DNA of 64,000 bases, from contig NC_047071.1 of the NCBI RefSeq assembly GCF_902459465.1, forward strand, positions 4,092,001 to 4,156,000, written 5' to 3'. The DNA is from Asterias rubens. Its lineage: Eukaryota. Shown one piece after another: positions 4,103 to 64,000 of the stretch. The notes beneath the pieces are model-generated. The model had not been told where the DNA came from. It made no database searches and worked only from the letters and a program-made list of their open reading frames with translations. The translations under genes were made by a program, and so were the position numbers. The number at the start of each line of letters is the position of its first letter. Position 1 is the first letter of the stretch.

Positions 4103-7100
4103 ATGGCGGACTCCAGTAATCAACGCAACGAGGCGACGAATGGAGGCCAGATTGCGATGGAACTGAACTGTTTAAAAGGCGACTGGGGTATACCTTCTGT
4201 AGACAGAAAGTGCCTGAATATTTTGGTATGAAAATATCACTCATCTGGTTTTAAATATAGATTATTCAACACAGAGCAATCAACCGCACATGCACACACA
4301 CAGTGACAGTGTGACTGTGGTGAGTGAATGGGACGAAAAACGCTGGCATTATTTATTAAGCGCATAAAATACATTCAATTCACCCGTGCTGCTCTACGGA
4401 CCCGGTGCAAAGTGTCCGGGAAAAGTTTCCGTATGGCGCCACCACTTTTTTCATTCTACCTCACTCGATCAAACAACAATGAAAACAAAAAAAAGAGAAT
4501 TCCCTTTTTGTAAAAATTTGTGAAAATGGGGGTACCAATGAAAAAGTGGTGGCACCATACGGAAAGTTATCAAAAAAATGGATTAGCATCAAATGAGATA
4601 TTCATTGGGTAAAAATGAATTAAAAAGTGGTGGCAGGATAGTTTCCGTATGGCGTCACCACTTTTTCATTCGGTATGATTTATGAAATAATATAGTCTTG
4701 GATATAGTATCTAATTTACCTCAAACTCAATGACTATCCCTTTTTGTAAAAAAGAGTAAAAAATGGGGGGCGCCATACAGAAAGTTATGGGAATCTAATC
4801 TAAAGTAAAGATAGATTTATTTGTTTTGTTTTTTTGACAGACATATGGACAGTTTGCAGGTGCATCCCTGAAAGTAAACAAGAATGGAAATTTGTGGAGA
4901 AATCCGTCAGGTATAGCCATCAATTCTTTTCATTCAACTTATTTTTTTGTTCGTTGTCTTTTCCTTCTTCTGTTCTTGTTTTAATATACATAAAGTGTGA
5001 TCACAGTCGACTCACATTATTAGTTTCCTCCGTCAGGCCATTTCCCAGTTTTCCGAGCTGCCCAAGAGGTCCTGAAGTCAGACACTCAAGTTATAAAGTA
5101 CTTCCAAGACAACCAGTTGGATCTAGATGAGGAATTGACGGACCAACAGAGGGCAGATGTCCTGGCGTTTCAGGCATTGATGGAAGAGAAATTTCTACCT
5201 GGATTGGTAAGGTTTAAAAACCATTTTACTGTATGACCTTTCATATGATTATGGTTTTACCCAGAGGCCATGTACGCTGGTGCCCTGGTCTTGGCCTTGG
5301 TGCCCCTGCAAACATTTTCTGTAGTCTTTACATTTTATCAATGAAAGTGCCCTGTGCAAAATGACAGTGGCCTTGCCCTCTCTAGGATAACTCGCGGCTT
5401 GAATAATGTACTTCTTATGCAGCATGCAATTTAAAGTTTTCATCAATTAGAGGATAGCAATGAATAAACATCCAAAAATCTTGTTTACAGCTTCATGTGT
5501 GGTGGATAGATGCTAAAAACTATGTCGAGTTTACGAGGCCTTGGTACGCAAAAGCTCTCCAATTCCCTTTGAATTACTTCATCCCTGGACGATGGCATCG
5601 AGAAGCGGAGCTAAGAGTGGAGGAGACAAGGGGAGGCAGCCACATGGAGCCACAAGAAGTCACTAACAGAGTAAGTGTTGAAAAGACACAGAAAACAGGA
5701 ATGAGAAATTTCACACTTTTAGCTGAATTCAGATTTTTTTTTTTAGTGTACCTCAAAAACAGAAAATGCTGTATTTTTTCTCCAAATAAAAACAAGTCAT
5801 GTTCTTTGATCTACCTCTCTTGTGCTGAGGACACTGCTCCCAGAAGCTCCTAGGAATCTAGATGCATTTATAACAAACGGTTACAAATGCTTTTCAAAGA
5901 CCAACTTGACCGATCCAAGGCAACGTATTCCTTTAATGAACCTCGTAAGATCTTGATCCAAGTTCCAGACTTCTTTGTCATCACTGACTCTTATCCCTGA
6001 CATGTGCTTAGATTTTAAACTTAATTATAAAACTCAGTGATTTTGAACTGTCCCATTTTTGTCAAGGTTCTCCTTTTTTCAAAACTGGGGGCATTCTGGA
6101 TCTGCATTTTTTAGATTTGGCCGAAGGATGCTGAATTGAAACAAAGTCTTTGGAATGTTTTCTACTTTGTGTTTATCTTTGTGTTAAAAGCCCTACTTGG
6201 CAATCTGGATCATTCTATATGACTTCTCTTGATTTTTTTGTGAAATTGTTTCTTATTATTATTGTTTATTTTGCGGTATCAGCCGAAATTTGTACGTATT
6301 AGCATGCAAATTGCGTCATCTGCTCGATACGCTTATGTAGCTTGTGCATGTGGAGAAAGTCTCTGTTGAAAACTCATTTTTTGTTTAAAGCTGCTTTTTT
6401 GTATCATTCTCTCTTTGTATTTTTAATGTTCTCTTTATGCGCTTAGAGGCTTTTTGCATTAGGCGCTTTACAAACGTCTTGTTATTATTATTTGTCTTTG
6501 ATCAACTTCTTATGATGTTGAGTTCTTCCTTCTCTATTGATAGGTATGCAGTGATGCTAAGGAATGTTTGAATCTTCTCTCTGTCAGACTTGGAGAAGAA
6601 GACTTCTTCTTTGGTAAAGTGTAAGTAACAGAGTTGTAAGAGATGAACAAATTCAATTTGGGAAGTGGAGGTCTTAACTGAGTTGCTAATGCATACTACA
6701 ATACTTATCATCACAGCTGTGGATTTCACAAAGAGGTAGGACTAGTCTTATCTCGAGTTAGGACCAGTTACTCGTCCTAACTTAGGACTATCCATGCAAT
6801 TTGTATAACTCCTAGGACTAGTCCTAAGTTAGGACTAGTCCTAAGTTAGGACTAGTCCTAAGTTAGGACTAGTCCTAAGTTAGGACTAGTCCTAACTCTT
6901 TGTGAAATCGACCGCTGGTCAATAAACCTTTTGCGAGTTAGATTTATATAATGTGTGGTACAATGACTTGCTCAGTTGCAATTGACTGCCTTAATTTGAA
7001 TTCCTGCGACTAATGACAGTTGCTGTAGCATATAAATAAATAAATAAAAGTAATAAAATAATGCAATTTCAAATTAATCAGCAAAGTGTATTATTGTGTT

Positions 7101-9637: not shown

Positions 9638-12600
9638 ATGGCAGCTTCTTGGGTCAGGTTAGGAATTCAACAAGCCTTGAAGTGCTCGGTAAGAAGTTGT
9701 CTATTGATACTGCCTCATCAACTTTTTGGACTTTTTGTTTTTACTTTTACTAGTTAGTGACGACCACCACCAGGTGATTTCAGATTGATCATTCATGCGT
9801 TGAGTGCACATGTTGATGTTCTGTTGTTGTATTATTGTCTTAACTTTGTTTTGTTTTGCTATGCTTACGATTGTTACTGTCAGTATTTCTGTTTATAAGT
9901 CTGTGATCTACATGTAGATCACAACCGAATAATCACGGGGATTACCAATCTGGTTGTAATTGTATTTGGTTTGTTTACTTCATTAGTTTACCTTTAGCCC
10001 GTTTAGAGGTTAGTCTTGAGTCTTTTGGGTATTTAAAGTAATCCCTGGTAGCAGTTCTGTTTCACTGGAACCATGGAGGTTCTACCTCCATGCTGGGACT
10101 AAACTGGGATGGTGCATCAGGTGCCGCCACTGGTCAAATGTGCAGGTGATAGTGAACTTATGTTTAATTAATATGCAAGTGAAAAGCAAAAGAGATTTAC
10201 AATACAGGAGCGTGGAATCAGTGCTAGGTGTTAAAACACCAAGAGCTGGTAGGGCTATTTTGGGGCTATTTTCTGGAATGCTATGACAGCAGAAATAGAA
10301 TTTGATAGTCTTCCCATATAAAAGGGAACTTGGCAAACTCGCACCATGCCACAGGCCCAGGGATAAACACCAAGCTGGCAACAGCCAATCTATCTCATTG
10401 GTGTAAGGTCTATGATGATTTAATATGAATTGCACAAATCAAGAAGTTGTGATTCAGTAACTACTGCTAGTACTAGATGACAATATTTATTCCAGTCTTT
10501 TGAAATCAGCGGTTAGCTGGGGGTTTCGAATCCACAACCATGTGATAGCAAGTCCTGCAGTCTTAACCACTTGACCACAGTGACAGTGATTGTCAATTAC
10601 CATAGTGCCCTGTTTGTTTTTTTGTGGTGCCCTTTGCAAAGCCAGTAAAATTACAATTTTCCTCATATGGTCAAAGCATGCCCCTTATTTATCAGAGGAT
10701 AAAAAATTGCTATGCCCCAAAGTCCAAGGCCTGGGTAAGTTAATCAGGACTTTTCAATTGTGTTCAGAGTTTATTTGTACCAAGGTGCTTTCGTTATTAT
10801 TGTCATTGAATAACAAACTGAATTTTTGGGTTGAACAAAGAATTGACTAGAGTGGGATTCGAACCAACGACCTCCGGATTAACGTGCCGGCGCTCTACCA
10901 ACTGAGCTATCTAGCCCTATATTGGGGGTGTCCCTATTTTGTCAATATTTTTGTTCGGGGTGAATAAAAAACTAACGCAGGCAAAATATTTCTTGTTTTA
11001 TTGCAGAGGGTAACCTTGTCAAGGCCTTACTCTTCAGAAAACTTGTGGAAACTTGGACGAATAAACCACGTGGCAATAGTGGTGCCCAATCTCGGTGAGT
11101 ACTGTTTTTGTGTATGTAAATTTAGTCTGGTTCTTTGTTCTTTCCCTAGAAGATAACTTTTGAGTAGAAGTGTACATGTAGTAGGCCCTATCCAATGAGA
11201 AGTGCTCAAAGGTGGTTTACCATTTATGAGAATCAAATGGCAAAAGAAAATTCCTTGAAATGGTTTTGATCCACCCCTAAATTAATTGACTGACTATTTT
11301 GTCTGTTACAAACACACACTGTAGGACAAAGTGATGTCACAAATGAAGGAAAATTGTTTTATGACTGCTGTCCAAGCTCGGGAACATTTAAAAACAAATC
11401 TTTAAAAACAGAGGACATAGACTGACAAAAACGAGGACCTTAAGAGAACACAATACACACAAAATTTAAGTTTACTTTCCCCTTTGGCAAAGTTTGTTAC
11501 TAATCTCAACATTATTTTGTTTCGTTGTATATTTTTTAGAAGAAGCAACACATCTTTACAAGAATGTGTTCCAAGCAACAGTCAGTGAACCACAAGTGAG
11601 TATCTTAATGGGTGCGTTCGTTTAGCTTCCCTGGGTCTACCCCGCGGTGCTCACTCGGGTGAGCCCTGACAAGAGCTAAACGAACAACCACTCGCCACTC
11701 TCGTAGTGACGTTGTTTACCTGGGGCCAGCCCCCAAGTGACCCACTCCACAAGAAGGGCACTGGGAGCTGACCCGGGTGAGCCCCTGGAATGATGTCCAA
11801 GCTATTCGAACGCACCGAGGCAGACCGGGGATGACCCAGGGAAGCTAAACGAACGCACCCAATGATTGTTAATATTATTATTTATTATTATTTCTTGTAA
11901 TGAAACCCAAGGATGCCTTAAAGGGTGTATGTACTTTTTGTAGGAGAAAAAAACACAATGTCCACAGATTTACACTAAACTTACACAGTTTGAAGATAAT
12001 GATAGTAGAAAGCTTCCCTGAAAATATTACGTACCGAGGTGCTGTAGTTTTTGGGTAATGAGTAAAACAATGTCATGAAAATAGTTTTCTTACCCAGTCA
12101 GTTTCCCTTGTGGTTTATATTGATATCTGAAACAAAAAGTCGCATCCCCTTAAGGTGATCCCCTGGCTGCCGCTTCCCAGGTTGTATCGTAATTTGGGTG
12201 TGATCCCTGGCTACACGGCAGTAAACGGTTGTATGGCTTCTGACTGGCACCCCCGAACAAAGATAATGACAAAATTGGGACACCGCCAACATAGGGCTAG
12301 ATAGCTCAGTTGGTAGAGCGCCGGCACGTTAATCCGGAGGTCGTTGGTTCGAATCCCACTCTAGTCAATTCTTTGTTCAACCCCGAAAATAGTTTTCGTC
12401 TCATGAGACGAAAATTATTTCAAGCATTTACAAACGTATTTTCATGACATTGTTTTACTCATTTCTCAAAAACTACAGCACCTGCAGGTAAGTAATATTT
12501 GAAGAGAACCTTTCCACTATCATTATCTTCAAATCCTGTAACTTTAATGTAAATCTATGGACATTTTGAAAAAGTACCCACATCCTTTAAAGGGTCTGTT

Positions 12601-15600
12601 TCGGTTTTGTACTGACTCTAAAAATTAATGGCAATAAAAACTACAGCAGCTTTGTAAAGCCATATTTGCATTTTGAGACACATTTGATAAATTTGTCAAG
12701 CAGTATTTTCTGCCATTATGAAATTCAACCCCGGTGGCTAGCAACATTTTTTCAATCCTTTAATTTAGAAACTTGTTGTTTAGGATTAAAAGTAGTTATA
12801 TTGTTTAAAACCACTATGTTTTTATCATTTCAATGTAGGCCTTGCCTGAACACGGAGTGACGGCCGTCTTTGTAGAACTACCCAATTCCAAGTTGGAGCT
12901 GTTACAACCACTTGGTGATGATAACCCCATCCAGGGATTCCTTAAGAAGAGGCCTGGTGGTGGAATACACCACATTTGTCTAGAGGTGAGGCTCCTTTCA
13001 ATCACAATTCCATTTTATTTTTATTTTTTCATCTAATTTTTATTTTATTTTCATGTAGTGTGATAAAAATAGCTCTTAAAGTTGGCTTTGAGAAATGAGA
13101 CTTAGTCACCAAAATACGTTTAACACACTAAAATAATTTTCGTCTCACTGAGACAAAATTGTTTTTGTGACTTGTTTTACTCATTTCTCAAAAAATACAG
13201 CACCTCAGCAAGTAATATTTTAAGGGAATCTTTCTACCATCATTATCTTCAAACTGTGCGAGCTCAATTTCAATCTGTGGACATAGTTTTTTGTGTCCAT
13301 CAAAAAGTACCCAGACCCTTTACTGTTGTAATATTTTGATGTGCTTTTCAATAAAAAACATCTAAAAACTATGGCCAGTTTAGGTCAAATAGTGTGATAT
13401 GTTTCCTGGTTTTGGTGAGTGTGACCATAGAGTAGCTCTGTCTTTACTCTGTGGTGTGACAAAGCAGGAAAGTGCCCTTATTTCATGGAGAAGAGATACA
13501 ATGTGGACAAGCTGTGTGTATCTGTATTTGTTCAGATCCTTCCTGTACACATGTATGTACAAACTAAATAGGAACAATGAACCTTAAAACCTACATAAAA
13601 GAGTTGACAAGTTTGTGATGTAAGAATCTCTGAAGAGTTACATGTAACTTTGAAACTACACTGTAGGACTACAGATTCCTGAACAACTCTTCCTGATTCT
13701 GTAAGTTTCCTTCAAAATAAACCAATCGTTCCATGTTCTGATGAGCAAATTAAAAAATCTCCCTGCTTGTGGAAACTTTTTCCCTATTAAATTACACTTA
13801 ATAATTTATATATATAATTATTTCCCTGATTGTTTTTTATTTCTCTGTTTTATTAAAAGTGTATCTATCAACATGTTACTGAGCATTGAGGAAGGAAAAT
13901 ACCCCCCAAAATCCTTCCTCCACACTTAAAATATACACAATTTTTAGTCAAAAATCATTACCTTAACTCGCCATAGAGGGCAGCATTCATGGGAGTAGTC
14001 AAAGGGAAATTTTGTACTTGGTCGATGGCTTGTTACTGTGTGCACATGCTGCACTTCATTACATGATGTATGGGACCTCAAATGCCATGTCAAGTATGAA
14101 GCAGAACTCTCTAGTTTTCGGAGACTACATGTCAATTGTTTGCCACAAGAGATGTTTGATTTTAGACCAGTATCGTAGGACTCAAGTCCGAGGATACTGA
14201 ACCAAGTCTGTTGAGATTTTACAGCTCGAGTCTTACCGAGAAATTGTTTGGGACTCGGACACAGACTTGTTTTAACTTGACTTATCATGTCTTAAAGTTT
14301 ACTCTGATAACTACTTGTGACTCACGAGTCACATATTTTTCCCGGCAATAATTTAAACCAAAATGAGATGAACAAACATCTTTTCATCATCGGAGAAATA
14401 AATTAGAGGAGTTCATCCTGAAATGTAATATGAGACATCTTGAAGATTTGGGATCTGGGTTGCAGATGGCAATAAGAAAGGAGGGGTCCCTTAAACCCAA
14501 CCCTCCACCCCATCCTAACCCTGCCCAAAACAACAAAATAAATATGCAGTCCAAAGCCAGCTTACTTAATGACATTTTGTACTAAAAAATGAAAGATAAA
14601 CACTTTTGAAGAAGGGCGGTTAATCCCTATAGATTCTTAACTCAACTTGCTCTAGATTTTACATCAGAGTATTGTCGCCTGCGTTTGTGCGGACAACATG
14701 TGTTTGTGGATCATTTTCCCCTCATACGTGTCAAATTATTCAATGAACACGTTTCATATTTTGTGTTAATGACCATGGGATATTAATTACAATCTGATGA
14801 CAATTAACATTTTAAGTTATTCTTGCTTTTGGGAACTATGAAACAGTGATTCTTCCTATAAATGCTACACATGTACAACTTTTGTACAAGCCTAGTCTGC
14901 CATTGTACATAACATGTTCTCCAGCTGATGGGTTTTCTATGCATAATATTTATGGTTGACACGCAATCCTCCTGTAATGTAGATCCCACCTGCTTTCGAA
15001 ATGACCTTTGCTATCTTTTGACAATCATCAGTGTGTAGTTTAGTAGCGCAGTGGACGCAGGCAGGCTCAGCAAAATGCATTCTTTGAACCACAACCCCCC
15101 CCCCCCCCCCTTTTGTATTATTTTAATTTCAACTTCCAAGGAGACTGCCGTTAATTTATGGGCATTTAGGTGTATCGGCCATCAGTCCAAGCAGACTGCA
15201 GTGTACTCGTTTATCATTCTTGCTTTGTGGACTGGATTCCATCTGTTCATTAAGATATGCTTGGCTGGTTATATGGCAGTTTCGATGGGCAGTTGGTTGG
15301 CTGGCTGCTAAAATCAGTCAGGGATGCCCTGTATATAACTCATAGCCCAACCCAATAGAAGAGCTTGAATAAGGGACCTCCAGAATTTGAGTCTAACGAA
15401 TGAATAGGCAGACTATGAACCAGTTGTAGAATGAAACCCTTTGTCAGTAATTTTGTTTCAGTAGCCAGTTTGCATGTTAGTGTATTCCAATAAGATTCGA
15501 AACTTAAAACACAAATTGCAGGATTTGAAATTGAAACAAAAGTTATTTAATTGATTTATTTCACTCTGAGAGCACACTGGTTATAAACAGAGATGAGAAA

Positions 15601-37788: not shown

Positions 37789-40700
37789 TTAATGATGGGG
37801 TTCCCGCGTTATTTTTGGCGTTATTCCAATCAGGATCATTCCTTCGACCTTGGAGAATATTCTCATCAAAATAATAGTTACAACAATGTGATAAATAATA
37901 TTGTGAGGCCAAAATGATACAAAGCCTCGTACTAAAAGTTCAAACAATTTCTTGGTAAAAAAAAACAAGAACAAACTTCTTTCTAAAGTTTGTCTTTAGT
38001 CGCAATTTGACCACAGGACAACACTTTGCAATGGGTCAGCACTCGATGTAAGAAACATTTTAAAGATATATTTCGACATCTCATAATCAGACATTCCTCA
38101 ATAAATTTCACAATCAACCGTTTCATTTTCTACCATTACAAAACAGTGGAACAATAAAATAAAAAATTAAAAAAACTATTCACTATTTTTTGTAAATATG
38201 CACCGGACAAAACTATTTTAACCACTTTATTTTCCTTGCTGTTTCGTTTGCTTGCGAAAAGTATCTCCACCAAAATAGGCCTATGATGTTACTATGATGT
38301 ATTTGAGTGTGATTTTATGCACCGGTTGTGCTTGTCAGATCGACGGCTTTAGGCAACAACAGCCAAAAGTGAATGTTTATCTCGGGCAGGAAAATGACCA
38401 CACTTGCAAGATTGAGATTTATTGCCCCTTTCCTACTCCTTTCTCTTTGGTACGCTACGGCTTCTTGTTTAGGATTTGCAATGGGGAAAATGAAAGCAGA
38501 ACTGTTTACGAGTCTGATATATGGCCACGAGTGGCGTTTTAAGGATAGACACTATAGTGATTGAAAAGGAAAGTTGAATTGAAATGTGAACATTGTTGTT
38601 GTGGAAGGCCTTGAACCAAATGATACCTAAAATTGTAAAATAGGCTGTGCATTACATATTTTATTGTGTGGAAGACATTGGTGGGTATTAAGAATGAGGA
38701 TATAGCTTCGGAATAATGTCTGTTCTAGGGGATGAGAAATTTCAGACTTTTATCTGAATTCATACGTTTCAAAGTCTGCCTGGTAAACATAAACATGCTG
38801 TATTTTTCTTTAAATAAAAACTTGTCATGCTCTTTGATCTACTTCTCTACCACTGAGAAAACTGCTACCCCAAAAAGTTGTACCTCCTAACATGGAGGTA
38901 TATTTCTACCTCCATGCTCCTAAGATCTGGATCACAGTTCCAGACTGACTCTCATCTCTGCTGTGCTGTTCCGATATTGTGTAATAACCAGCAATCATCA
39001 CAACATAGAGCTATCACACAATGATCAAAATCTGTAGAACGATAAGTCCTCCGAAATAATTTTCGTGGTTTTATTATTCTTGCAATATGTTTTTTGCATA
39101 ACTTCTCCATGCTTATACAAGGTTGATCCATTACCGAATGTACTATACGTAGAAATTAGAAAAATGTGGCGTCGTTGTACAATGCTTAAAAATGCAGGCA
39201 ACAACTGCTGCACATAACATTCAATTTTGATTAAAACCGACACGGCGTTCGAGTCGACCTACCATGCCGTGGCCTTGACAAAATGCCCCGGCTTCATCGA
39301 GGGATCTCACCGCCTAACATTCTTAACTCTCCATGCCATGTGATTTCAGACTGTCTTTCCTTTTCCCTTCATACTTCCGGCCATGTGTAAATTCGATCAC
39401 CAACATTTGGACTGGTTCTCAATTCAGGGTCATGGTGCACCAGATCTCGCGCGTTTTTAGAATATTGTGCCCCGTTGAAGTGCGCGATTTGATGTCCTGC
39501 AGCTATGGAGGTGTGTAAACCCGAAAGTGGACCAACACGTTTGAATTTGCGCGATACATGCACTATCTGCGTACACTATGTCTAGTATTAGTAACTGACT
39601 CTCTTGTGAAGCAATTCTGCCCTAACATCTTCAGATTTGATTTAATGGCACTTGGTTTTTTTTTATCATGAGTTTAAAGAAACATTTTCACTGAGAATTA
39701 TCAAATTGAATCAGGATATTAAAGTATAAAGTATAGTTATACTTAAAGGTATAGCCTACATAATATATTTCGAAGACAAGATAATGTATGAAATGTAGTG
39801 ATTACTAACAAAACGTGGGCCTACACAAAATATTGGGGATACCAACAACCATGCAACAACAAAGCACATGTATCAAACACTATTCAATATGTTTAACTAA
39901 GCTGTGATTAACTAAGAAACCACTCTGCATTGTATTCAACCATAGGATTCAACCTATGGTGTGCTTGACAAAATCAACATTAATGCGACAGAAATGCACA
40001 CATCCATCAAAACTCTTACACCGTTTTGTTTAGAAAGGCTGGTGTCAATTCTCCCGCGATTTTTCCGTCACATACGCCATGGTCAGGAGGAAGGAACCAC
40101 CACACATACAACCATAGAGTAAGGACAGAGAACAACCCTCCCTGCAAACCACACTCACCACAAGATAGCTACGTACATTTTCCCAAGAAGCTTCGATTCC
40201 AAAAGTTGCCGTCAGTACCTGTGCCCATATATGGCGAAGGAGATCTACTAGAAGGTTGAAATCTTGGTTGTGTTTAAACCATGGTTGTAGTATAGAGAAT
40301 CCCCGCTTCGTTGCACCATGGTTGCGCCTGGCACTTGACTTTCATAGTATTCACAGAGTGACTGTGATATGAGGGGACCCTAAGGGTTAGGTAAAGGGTC
40401 AGGTCATGTCCTTAGATGCCCTCTCAATGACTGCCACCTCACCGGACCCACTGGGGCAGGATTAACGAGCCACCAACGCTAGTAATACGTAGCCTGCTGC
40501 ATGTATGTATGCTGATTCAATGGCAGCCCAAGCACTCTTGTCCAAGGTTGTGTCAATGTGTAAAAGGCTCCATCCAAACGTAAACGGGGAGTACTGTGGG
40601 AGTTGATGTGTTATGGTTGGGGCCGTTTAGCCCATTGGCGATTTAGCAAGATTGTGCATGCTGTATGATCAGTATTAACATCATCATCATCATCGTCAGG

Positions 40701-59001: not shown

Positions 59002-59372
59002 TTAAGTATCAGGATGCACCAAGTGAAGATAGTGGTCTTTAACAATACCAATAAAACGAAAGTTACTCGTTCGTTATATAGCTTCACGTTATATACTTTC
59101 ATTGTGAAAAAGTCGCGCCATTTTGGGGAAGGGCGGGAAACGCTTGGCGTGCTTTTTATACATTATTGAATTACCAGCTGTTCTAAACAGTTTTGCAACA
59201 CAAGATGGCGGAACTATGATGGCAGAACAATTAACCTTTTCAACTGTCCTTGAAATAATATACGCGCGTTCCACTTAAAATAATTACCAAATCGAAATGA
59301 AACTATTGTAGATTGTGATACCAGTTCATTTTTATTAAAAGACAAATCTGTGGTTTTCTGCTAGGTGAGATC

Positions 59373-60525: not shown

Positions 60526-61315
60526 AGGTCTCTGGGAGCCCATCAAAGTTGGCGGTTGAAGCATATATGAGCAGATACTATAGTATTTAGTGAACAACCA
60601 CCAGTTAACCCATGGATGGTTAACCCAACTAATAAATATATATGCATTGGAATGGTCTATAGATGTAAATCAAATGAGTATTCATTGAAATTGTATAAAT
60701 AGCTGCACTTAGACTGTCTTTTTCGATTAACTATTTTGTTTTACTTTTACTAGGTTTGGGTCTACAAGGCTGAGTTATGTGTTCATGTTGACGCCAATTT
60801 TAGAAATGCTATCTGGAATAATACTTTAATGAACTTCAAACAACAGTGAATTTTCTACCTCCATGATTTCACCAAACATAATGTGAGTTGCACATTGTTG
60901 TTGTTGTTTTGGCAAATAATTGAGCAAGTCATTTTACATCATAACATTTTGACCACACTTACCTTTGGTTGTGATTATCGAGATCGACAGACAGAAAGCT
61001 TTCAACCAAACCCGGAGCTGAGATTCGACGGCACCCAGACCACCATGTCGTCAGGGAGTCCATCCACACCGTCAGGCTAGCTCATGAGCACGACACGTCG
61101 TCCGGTGATGTGGTCGTGAACCAAGTGTCTTCTTTGTTACGACGACAGACGACAACCGAACTCCGTGATCAAATCATGCAAAAGTAACCTTCGTATTTCC
61201 CGCCCAATCGTCATCAAAGATCATAAAACAAATCTCCCCTTTCGTTTCGTTTGATTCATATAAGTCGTAAAACCAGGGACGGCCGTCGTCTGTCTCGGCT
61301 ATCTCTTGGTTCTAA

Positions 61316-61351
61316 CATAGAGTAAGGACAGATCTCTGTCCTTTCTCTATG
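61316..61351. mobile_element. P-superfamily-like TIR-only remnant (putative excision footprint)
   Basis: GTTCTAA|CATAGAGTAAGGACAGA-TCTCTGTCCTTTCTCTATG|GTTCTAA. Similar 7-bp-TSD remnants lie at 10072-10092, 13426-13453, 38891-38916 and 60611-60618. Confidence 0.7.
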
Positions 61352-64000
61352 GTTCTAACAAAGAAACAGACTGTACGGTCGGTGACTGTCTAGCCACAGG
61401 GTACATCAACAAAATTTCATTGAATATTTTGTAGATAAGACAGAATATGCTATATCGGAAGTTAGTGTGACTCGAGGTTCGGAATGAACCGAACCGAACT
61501 GTTTAACCCGAAATTTATCATTTGAAAACGAAACAACAACAACGAAGATGCGTACCATGACCCCATTTTGGTCATTCATCTTTCTCAACAAAAAAAATGC
61601 ATTTATTAAGCTTTTTTGGGCTATCCAGGGTTGGGCCATCATTGGCTTTCTGTTGAATGCTTTAGACACCCAGCGTTCCGGAATCAACAGCGCCCTCTCT
61701 TCACTTCGTTCTTGTGTTTTTTTAGAAAACCAGGGTCCTACTATATACAGGGCTTGGAATACGCTCGTGATTTTGCAGTCGCCTGTCAGCGGCGTGCAGT
61801 TTGTCGTGCAGTTTGTTTTAGAGATGCAGTCGATTCCGGGATTTGGAAAATGCGCATAACAAAATTGTGATGATGGCATTGGATCCAACCGTGCACAGGA
61901 GGCTTGAAAATACCATGGGAAAATCACAAGGGAATAGCTATAGGATTTCATGAGATGTTTTCTGTCACAAAATATTTCCTTCTGCTGTTTGTTATTTTTT
62001 CCCCCATAATTTTGCCCTTAGCCGCGATGGAAAATGTACTTTTGGCGGATTTTAACAAACATTATATGAATTATCCCTTTCACCACTGTAATCTTTACGA
62101 CTTACATACACCCTTAACCCCATCTTCCCTTTAGCTTTTGCTATTAGCCCCTTCACACAATAAATACCCTAAACACGATATACAAAGGAGGAGGATCAAA
62201 TATGATGAATGGCTTGCCAAACTAGAGGAAGATGTAACAGAAACTTGGAAACAATGATAGGATGAGTCTACCGAATAAACTGACTCCCACAGCCAGGTCG
62301 TTGGGACGTACATCAACCATCTAAGCCCCGATGCTTGAGGCTTGACGCCAAGGGAATTGCCGTACAATACAACCCCATACCCTCCATACAATCAGGTATT
62401 GAACAAAATTGTGTATGAATGTTCCGCACGGTCAGGTCACCCAGGGTAGATAGAGCTGGGACAAGGTGGGTATGAATTCAATTTTTGGTTTATTCAAATG
62501 TGTTTTCTTTCATTCTTCATAACATATTCAGTGATTCGAATAGCTGCGGCTGCGTTTAACCTTCCAAAGGATAGGCAGTGAATCCACACAATGATCCTGC
62601 ATTAAAAACACCTTTTTTTTCTTCTATCGACACATTGCTATTGACTTATACTTTTGAGTGGGTTGTTTTTTTCGTATTAGAGAGCTTTATCAGAGTTCAG
62701 ACAGAGATCGGGACTTTCCGGTTCACTTCTTTTCGTCTGATGCTGATGGGAGTCGGGATTTTTTTCTTTTTCTAAAAGGCAGTTTCAACATGTTGGAAAC
62801 AAGATATTTTATTGGGAAGTGTTAACTGTTTTATTTTCCACAAGCAAAACAAGAATACCCAAAGGGTTGTCTGTGTGATATGGCGGCCCTGTTATTCTGG
62901 GTTTCAGCTCTGGGTGAAACGTCAGTTTTTCAAACTTCAATTCCCTCGATTATGTGCTGTTGTTTTTGTAGTCTTCCAAACCTGTGGTATAATTACTTTA
63001 TTGATGTTCCACATTTTTTGGTCTGTAACCTAAGTATTTTGAGTAGAAAAAAAATCAACAAAAGTGGAGATCCTCCGCCCCCCCCCCCAGCAAAAAAAAT
63101 ATCACATCACTGCAAGTTTCCGACTTTATCCCACCGCCAACAACTTCATCTTCGTATAGGTGACATTCTTTGCCAGTTGAGGGCGCTAGTGAAGTGTTTG
63201 GCACATGATTTTGCAGAGCAACACATTTTTGTTTTACCATTATTTTAGTTTTCTCAAATTTGATCACCATATTATGCTGATCACGTCTACCCATAACTTC
63301 GATGTTTTTGTTGTTGTTGTCATAAACCAACCAAGTTTTCTTTGATATGCCTACAGTGTAAAGTGATACCAACTTTGATTCAAACTCAATAAGATTTTGT
63401 TATTTTGGTAAAAGGCAAAAGCAAACGATAATGTTATTTATGAATTTTTTCATTGACGTGCCTTCAAACAAAAGTTAGGCCTATTAAGTATTTCACTTTC
63501 CCGCAGGAGTGAATGCCTCTCTAAAATAAAAACCATTTCACTTCATCGGTCATAATATCACATCATATCAGCTTCACTGGCAGGGGGGGTAGTTGGATGA
63601 CTTTTTATTGTTATAGAAACTTTGCCATCAAATTGTTCATCACACCTATGACCTTGTAAACATTGTGTGAACCAATTATTTCAAATTATTTCACATACAA
63701 AATAAGGTGAACAACTTAAATCCGCCAGGCCCCTCCCGCCAGGCGGGTTATGATACCTCGCAGTATTTCACCAGAACCAAAGGAGGGCGCTATTGTAAAG
63801 AAGCAGTAGGCATTATGTGTCCCATCCCCCCACCCTCGATTTCTTGATAGTGAAGTGCTTCTGTTTGAAGAAATTGAGTGTACCTTTTATCAAGTAATTA
63901 AGTTGACCTTTGATATTACACACAACCTGCTGTGCTTAATGATCAGAAATTGTGCAGGAATGTCACAAAATATTCACCAAAAAAGCATCCTCTATATAAC

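Follow-up and report, generated by a model that had tools for sequence, protein, structure and literature searches.

Two Fused Transposon Ends Enclosed by a 7-bp Target Site Duplication

The window that we analyzed, a stretch of 64,000 nucleotides from the genome of the starfish Asterias rubens, contains at positions 61309 to 61358 a short unit in which two inverted transposon ends are fused without any sequence between them. The question that this locus raises is how such a unit came into being. Re-reading the sequence verified the structure described in the initial annotation (17 and 19 nt of two inverted ends inside a perfect 7-bp duplication). A left copy of the target site duplication (TSD) GTTCTAA (61309..61315, plus strand) is followed by a left arm (61316..61332, plus strand) that corresponds to the first 17 nt of a transposon end with the consensus CATAGAGTAAGGACAGAGA, hereafter referred to as family 1, and by an inverted right arm (61333..61351, minus strand) that comprises the complete 19 nt of this end with a single difference, namely A instead of T at position 8; the right copy of GTTCTAA (61352..61358, plus strand) closes the unit. 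The same position-8 variant is present beside a P-type gene at the A. rubens locus L058, which is described below. As single-stranded DNA, the segment 61309-61358 folds into a hairpin (z = -6.9). An Rfam search with this hairpin matched no known RNA, and the open reading frames neighboring the site yielded no Pfam match.

The window carries two further family-1 structures. An older two-armed footprint, likewise recovered when the sequence was re-read, is found at 13419..13460 (plus strand); it has the TSD GTGTGAC on both sides, a left arm of 9-10 nt (13426-13435) and an inverted right arm of 18 nt (13436-13453) with two differences from the consensus. The third structure is located at 40106..40136 (plus strand) and consists of the TSD ATACAAC (40106-40112), a perfect 19-nt arm (40113-40131) and the letters ACAAC (40132-40136). 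This site had been taken for a longer left end, and hence for proof of a longer terminal inverted repeat (TIR), a reading that is wrong: ACAAC represents the last five nucleotides of the site's own TSD, so that 40113 marks a one-armed footprint with a resected second TSD copy. In total, four matches to the 18-mer end (with up to three mismatches) are present in the window, while 0.02 are expected from shuffled sequences.

A second family of scars, with the end CATGGAGGTAGAAATAGA and its variant CATGGAGGAAG, is represented in the window at 1900-1935, 10065-10099, 38884-38923 and 60852-60865, mostly with 7-bp TSDs; the last of these scars is one-armed. Two other repeats in the window deserve mention in their own right. 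The segment 58592-59182 belongs to an extremely high-copy repeat whose summed word depth reaches millions in each of the four runs; position 59005 is joined back to 58622 in many contigs, which implies that a unit of about 384 bp is arranged in tandem elsewhere. A small array of the palindrome GGACTAGTCC with the spacer TAAGTTA occupies 6825-6882, and the GGACTAGTCC motif is also found between two duplicated scars at C1:25807678-25807741.

Hundreds of Ends and No Common Continuation in the A. rubens Genome

We searched the A. rubens assembly (417.6 Mb) for family-1 ends; all counts from these searches are lower bounds. The 18-mer end, with no more than one mismatch, has at least 496 matches, while its reversed control has none. 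No shared sequence past position 19 was found in 30 loci around such matches. Seven of these loci are two-armed, and in each of them the second arm is followed by a TSD copy, which is identical at 7/7 positions in four loci and at 5-6/7 in three; about 12 are one-armed, with the whole TSD or a 4-6-nt suffix of it within 0-2 nt of the arm; and about ten have neither a recognizable second TSD copy nor a shared continuation. No bias is seen in the base directly after the 19-nt arm (A 6, C 7, T 8, G 1), and partly deleted TSDs are common among the genomic loci.

Exact 19-mer arms that also satisfy the suffix condition occur at least 147 times. Among the 100 of them that were listed, no common continuation was detected save for one three-copy repeat. 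The copies of this repeat are 99% identical, segmental, and extend over 200 nt of sequence left of the arm as well; since the left flank is included, the repeat represents a duplicated scar. Thus, none of the approximately 130 A. rubens arms inspected continues into an element, and a full-length family-1 element was not found among the 30 loci and the 100 listed 19-mer arms. This combination of many scars and no elements would fit a history in which a few copies hopped many times over a long period, with a recognizable scar remaining after each hop. A scan of metagenomes with the 19-mer returned one contig only, which looks unrelated, and the Logan contig L077 (P0004) has no termini of the family-1 type. 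One locus, L027 (G000 C2:6406732), shows a 19-nt arm followed by an inverted copy of its left flank (AGGTTAT versus ATAACCT) and resembles a fold-back repair product.

The insertion sites share a sequence preference. The seven nucleotides preceding 32 independent arms yield the palindromic consensus RTYNRAY (R-T-Y-A-R-A-Y over the 32 arms), in which the second TSD position is T at 26 of 32 sites (p 6e-9) and the sixth is A at 29 of them (p 2e-12), and all three window TSDs, GTTCTAA of the 61309 site among them, conform to it. A palindromic target preference is what one would expect if a transposase dimer integrates symmetrically. TSDs in the P superfamily measure 7-8 bp, and its TIRs have CA...TG termini. 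Such termini are accompanied by a TSD of 7 bp at the window sites, at the genomic loci, in the element of Patiria miniata and at the Acanthaster planci footprints described below.

A Sharp Upper Limit for the Length of the Arms

Two-armed units with 9-nt termini and a gap of 0-30 nt are present at no fewer than 110 sites, as compared with two for the control. Over a gap range twice as wide (31-91 nt), at least six sites were found, one of which consists of two adjacent units. Expressed as density per length class, this corresponds to 3.5 sites per nt for gaps of 0-30 nt and 0.1 for gaps of 31-91 nt, a drop of about 36-fold. We read the arm lengths by eye at 50 listed two-armed sites (100 arms). 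They range from 9 to 19 nt, with counts of 12, 8, 6, 11, 19, 7, 5, 9, 6, 6 and 11 for the successive lengths; hence, exactly 19 nt are retained in 11 of the 100 arms at these sites, and no arm is longer. Among the listed sites, the longest filler-free unit is a perfect 19+19 palindrome (C2:14085059-14085096), a complete form that is met in only one of the 50; unit lengths vary from 19 to 38 nt. Units longer than 38 nt contain filler, in one instance (C7:2037693) with the end itself as the template of the copy.

Cleavage at a fixed position, followed by variable resection, predicts that arm lengths have a fixed maximum and accumulate there; internal deletions do not predict this pattern. The scars themselves therefore point to deep staggered cleavage that leaves the TIR tips behind, no more than 38 nt in total. 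The initial annotation had anticipated a ceiling near 17-19 nt; the ceiling is indeed sharp, and arm lengths do not run on continuously beyond 20 nt, yet its value is 19 nt and not the 17 nt of Drosophila.

The unit types 18+10, 16+12, 13+13 and 19+7 are commoner than independent trimming predicts, which could reflect a repair bias or the occasional re-mobilization of short units. Both scar families, despite their different sequences, have a surplus of 13-nt arms and of the perfect 13+13 palindrome; this excess hints at a protected length or at a second preferred processing point. Genome-wide, the second family comprises at least 339 two-armed units (control: four), and its arms do not exceed 18 nt.

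Starfish Elements That Connect the Ends with P-Type Genes

Elements from two other starfish link ends of this kind to transposase genes. A 3,591-bp element of P. miniata (L075:6422-10012) is bounded by 16-bp TIRs (CATAGAGCAAGGACAA), which match the A. rubens arm in 15 of 16 positions, and is flanked by the 7-bp TSD GTACTTG. It encloses P0003, whose product is 61% identical to that of the A. rubens L058 reading frame and contains solely PF21787, the TNP-like RNase H N-terminal domain, so that this Patiria copy is devoid of the 3' part of the transposase gene. Its 5' TIR lies 1.58 kb before the ATG codon. The second element, from A. planci (L074:5686-15223), is 9.5 kb in size and has perfect 36-bp TIRs starting with CATGGAG around P0009, which encodes the N-terminal RNase H, GTP-binding and C-terminal RNase H segments (PF21787 + PF21788 + PF21789) and matches the structure of the Drosophila P transposase (PDB 6P5A) with an E-value of 2e-15. 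A complete RNase H and GTP-binding core is present in P0009 only; Patiria P0003 and A. rubens P0001 are partial. A matching TSD was not evident at the Acanthaster element, and a second gene of 541 aa is located on its opposite strand. The same 10 kb contain four scars of a near-identical end with arms of at most 17 nt, two of them within perfect 7-bp TSDs. Compared with the full 36-bp TIR of the element, these scars retain just the outer half.

Judged from these sequences, the CATRGAG ends and their 7-bp TSDs belong to a predicted THAP-less clade of P-type elements. A search for the THAP domain gave no match at E<=0.001 in P0001, P0003, P0007 and P0009; weak zf-AD and RAG1_imp_bd-like matches were obtained instead. 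THAP is typical of the superfamily without being catalytic, and we therefore treat its absence as a difference between clades. The proposal of a P/THAP9-type enzyme is supported in its first half by a P-type gene between such ends, while the term THAP9-type is loose for a clade that has no THAP domain.

P-Type Genes of A. rubens

About 14 loci with P-type domains (PF12017 and PF21787) are present in A. rubens, and the exact family-1 end is absent from all of those scanned. One of them, L058 (C8:17162477), corresponds to LOC117293214 and carries a 628-aa reading frame with a P-type HTH, a TNP-like RNase H N-terminal domain and, at its N-terminus, a weakly matching zf-AD/RAG1-importin-like zinc module. 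In the A. rubens homologue P0001, PF21787 and PF21788 are present. A family-1 structure composed of a 14-nt arm and an opposite arm of 6-7 nt (L058:3186-3239; G000 C8, ~17.164 Mb) is positioned 34 nt upstream of the LOC117293214 start codon. Its flanks (TTTTTAA and GTCTGCA) do not form a TSD, and no 3' TIR was found within 2.8 kb. This scar may mark the point at which the gene lost its own 5' end, for instance through an excision that used the end of a nested element. We consider it improbable, but conceivable, that LOC117293214 lost its 5' end by such an excision and became an immobile source of transposase that still excises non-autonomous relatives, with the family nearly cut out of the genome as a result; if true, LOC117293214 would be in effect a host-resident excisase that clears a transposon family.

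For the second family, an arm is found at L063, 124 nt before a degraded P-type reading frame. This locus is present in a single copy and has no 3' TIR within 4.4 kb, and it may therefore be just a one-armed scar. Two other groups of ends at the P-type loci of A. rubens were considered and set aside: family A, with the ends CACTGAYCTC and an 8-bp TSD, does not have family-1 ends, and family B, which starts with CATAGACTCA, has only one two-armed unit left. Internally deleted P-type elements with the ends CACTGAYCTCTAT and the 8-bp TSD GTTCACAC reside at G000 C15:5376348-5379478 and, as a near-identical copy, at ~C15:5477713; hence, the A. rubens genome holds P-type clades with 7-bp and with 8-bp TSDs.

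Age of the Family-1 Unit at 61309

Contigs from four runs were used to compare alleles at 61309. Contigs from organism C and from a marine metagenome, near-identical to the window, span 61309-61358 unchanged, and a contig of organism B, about 4% divergent from the window, spans the scar with only three gap letters. No filled or empty allele was seen among the contigs of the four runs; those covering the site all carry the scar, which is fixed. Its presence in organism B, a sister species diverged by about 4%, dates the 61309 scar to before the split between the two, and the earlier description of the responsible transposase as active is not borne out. Two other contigs of organism B stop matching the window at ~61256-61258 and continue with 58 and 141 unlike letters, respectively; these breaks, about 50 nt from the scar, may reflect an insertion or a rearrangement in that species.

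Origin of the Family-1 Units

We regard it as very probable that a cut-and-paste transposon of the P superfamily left the family-1 units behind as scars at its donor sites. The ceiling on arm length, the non-uniform units and the P-type gene between near-identical ends all support this reading, which had been put forward from the window alone. The element would have inserted into a palindromic 7-bp target (RTYNRAY) and thereby duplicated it. Upon excision, the transposase would make its 3' cut precisely at the end of the element and its 5' cut at a position that the scars place about 19 nt inside, so that each flank would keep a single-stranded tail with up to 19 nt of the TIR. End joining is the probable route of repair; it would trim the tails to a variable extent, sometimes add filler, and fuse them. 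The predicted product is a TSD copy, two arms of at most 19 nt each and a second TSD copy, or a one-armed scar when one side has been resected. The enzyme that acted in A. rubens was presumably P-type, a link suggested by the related element in another species and by the structure resembling a footprint that precedes the A. rubens homologue by 34 nt.

A different origin would be required if the units had moved as such. In that case the palindrome itself, about 38 bp long or shorter (e.g., 13+13), might be mobile with 7-bp TSDs, and the shorter forms would be later central deletions, palindromes being known as deletion-prone. Identical units do occur at unrelated sites with different TSDs (e.g., 18+10 at L015 and L016), 19+7 recurs at six to eight sites, and 13+13 is found in both families. 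However, the supposed 19+19 master accounts for only one of the 50 listed sites, and the lengths are spread broadly from 19 to 38 nt without a mode at full length, which is not the behavior of an identical unit that is transposed repeatedly. One-armed sites, moreover, keep exactly 19 nt on one side when the opposite arm has been lost together with part of the TSD, while a central deletion would not stop at the center of the palindrome. Break repair typically produces fillers with templated copies, and the related elements with the same ends measure 3.6-9.5 kb and have a transposase gene inside. We therefore consider mobile micro-MITEs highly improbable.

The arms would tell nothing about the position of the cut if they were remnants of internal deletions or solo TIRs, left when abortive gap repair, recombination or replication slippage removed the interior of an element. 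Internally deleted copies are a known product of P elements, and the Patiria element has itself lost the 3' part of its transposase gene; yet such processes should leave a continuum of lengths, while the density of sites falls about 36-fold past a gap of 30 nt and the arms pile up at 19 nt and go no further. A family of different sequence is limited in a similar way, at 18 nt. This makes an origin by internal deletion extremely unlikely. We attach just as slight a probability to excision by a non-P transposase that generates 6-8-bp TSDs through an uncharacterized deep stagger, with the P-type genes being coincidental or cross-mobilized passengers. No A. rubens element joining the exact ends to a transposase gene was found, and the clade has no THAP domain, as this alternative would have it. 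Against it stand two independent sea-star elements in which CATAGAG or CATGGAG inverted repeats enclose a P-type gene, with the Patiria element combining a 7-bp TSD and 15/16 identity to the arm, and the fact that the literature consulted ascribes a stagger of this depth only to P transposase (PMC7776569).

Discussion

The scars are best compared with those of the Drosophila melanogaster P element, whose transposase is set apart by an unusual 17-nt staggered cut (PMC7776569; PMC10983969). As in Drosophila, the ends begin and finish with CA...TG, the TSD is kept on both sides, the tips of both TIRs are retained and fused, a hard limit, probably set by the cut, governs the arms, and the target preference is palindromic; in the related Acanthaster element, the transposase also combines an RNase H fold with an inserted GTP-binding domain. 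The starfish scars differ in their ceiling of 19 nt (18 nt in the second family) instead of 17, in a TSD of 7 bp instead of 8 bp, and in the zf-AD/RAG1-importin-like zinc module that takes the place of THAP at the N-terminus of the clade. While footprints of the Drosophila P element come from excision assays, those reported here constitute a genomic fossil record.

Zebrafish Pdre2/THAP9 is likewise a deuterostome P-type element with few copies and short TIRs that start with CATA (13 bp in Pdre2, 16 bp in Patiria) (PMC10983969); unlike the starfish clade, Pdre2 has 8-bp TSDs and a THAP domain. We found no description of genome-wide Pdre2 footprints in the literature, nor did a literature search reveal anything on P-type scars in echinoderms. 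What the present analysis adds for family 1 is the 19-nt ceiling, the revised reading of the site at 40113, the palindromic target consensus, and the Patiria and Acanthaster elements that link the ends to P-type genes.

Footprints of Tc1/mariner elements resemble the starfish scars in that nucleotides of the transposon ends remain between the duplicated target sites. Tc1/mariner scars retain 2-3 nt per end; they are thus a few bases long and not family-specific, unlike the scars reported here. MITEs, too, are short, non-coding inverted-repeat units with TSDs. They share a common length and internal sequence and amplify as uniform units, whereas the starfish units have no interior, range from 19 to 38 nt and include many one-armed sites.

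A deep staggered cut has been documented biochemically only for the Drosophila P transposase. The hundreds of starfish scars, with their sharp limit of 19 nt (18 nt in the second family), indicate that a THAP-less clade of deuterostome P-type elements has conserved this geometry, and they predict a cut position that is open to a direct cleavage assay. P-type scars are long enough to be assigned to a family and thus provide a rare fossil record of single excision events, one that can be used to count hops, to date activity, and to read target preference and repair outcomes in a non-model animal.
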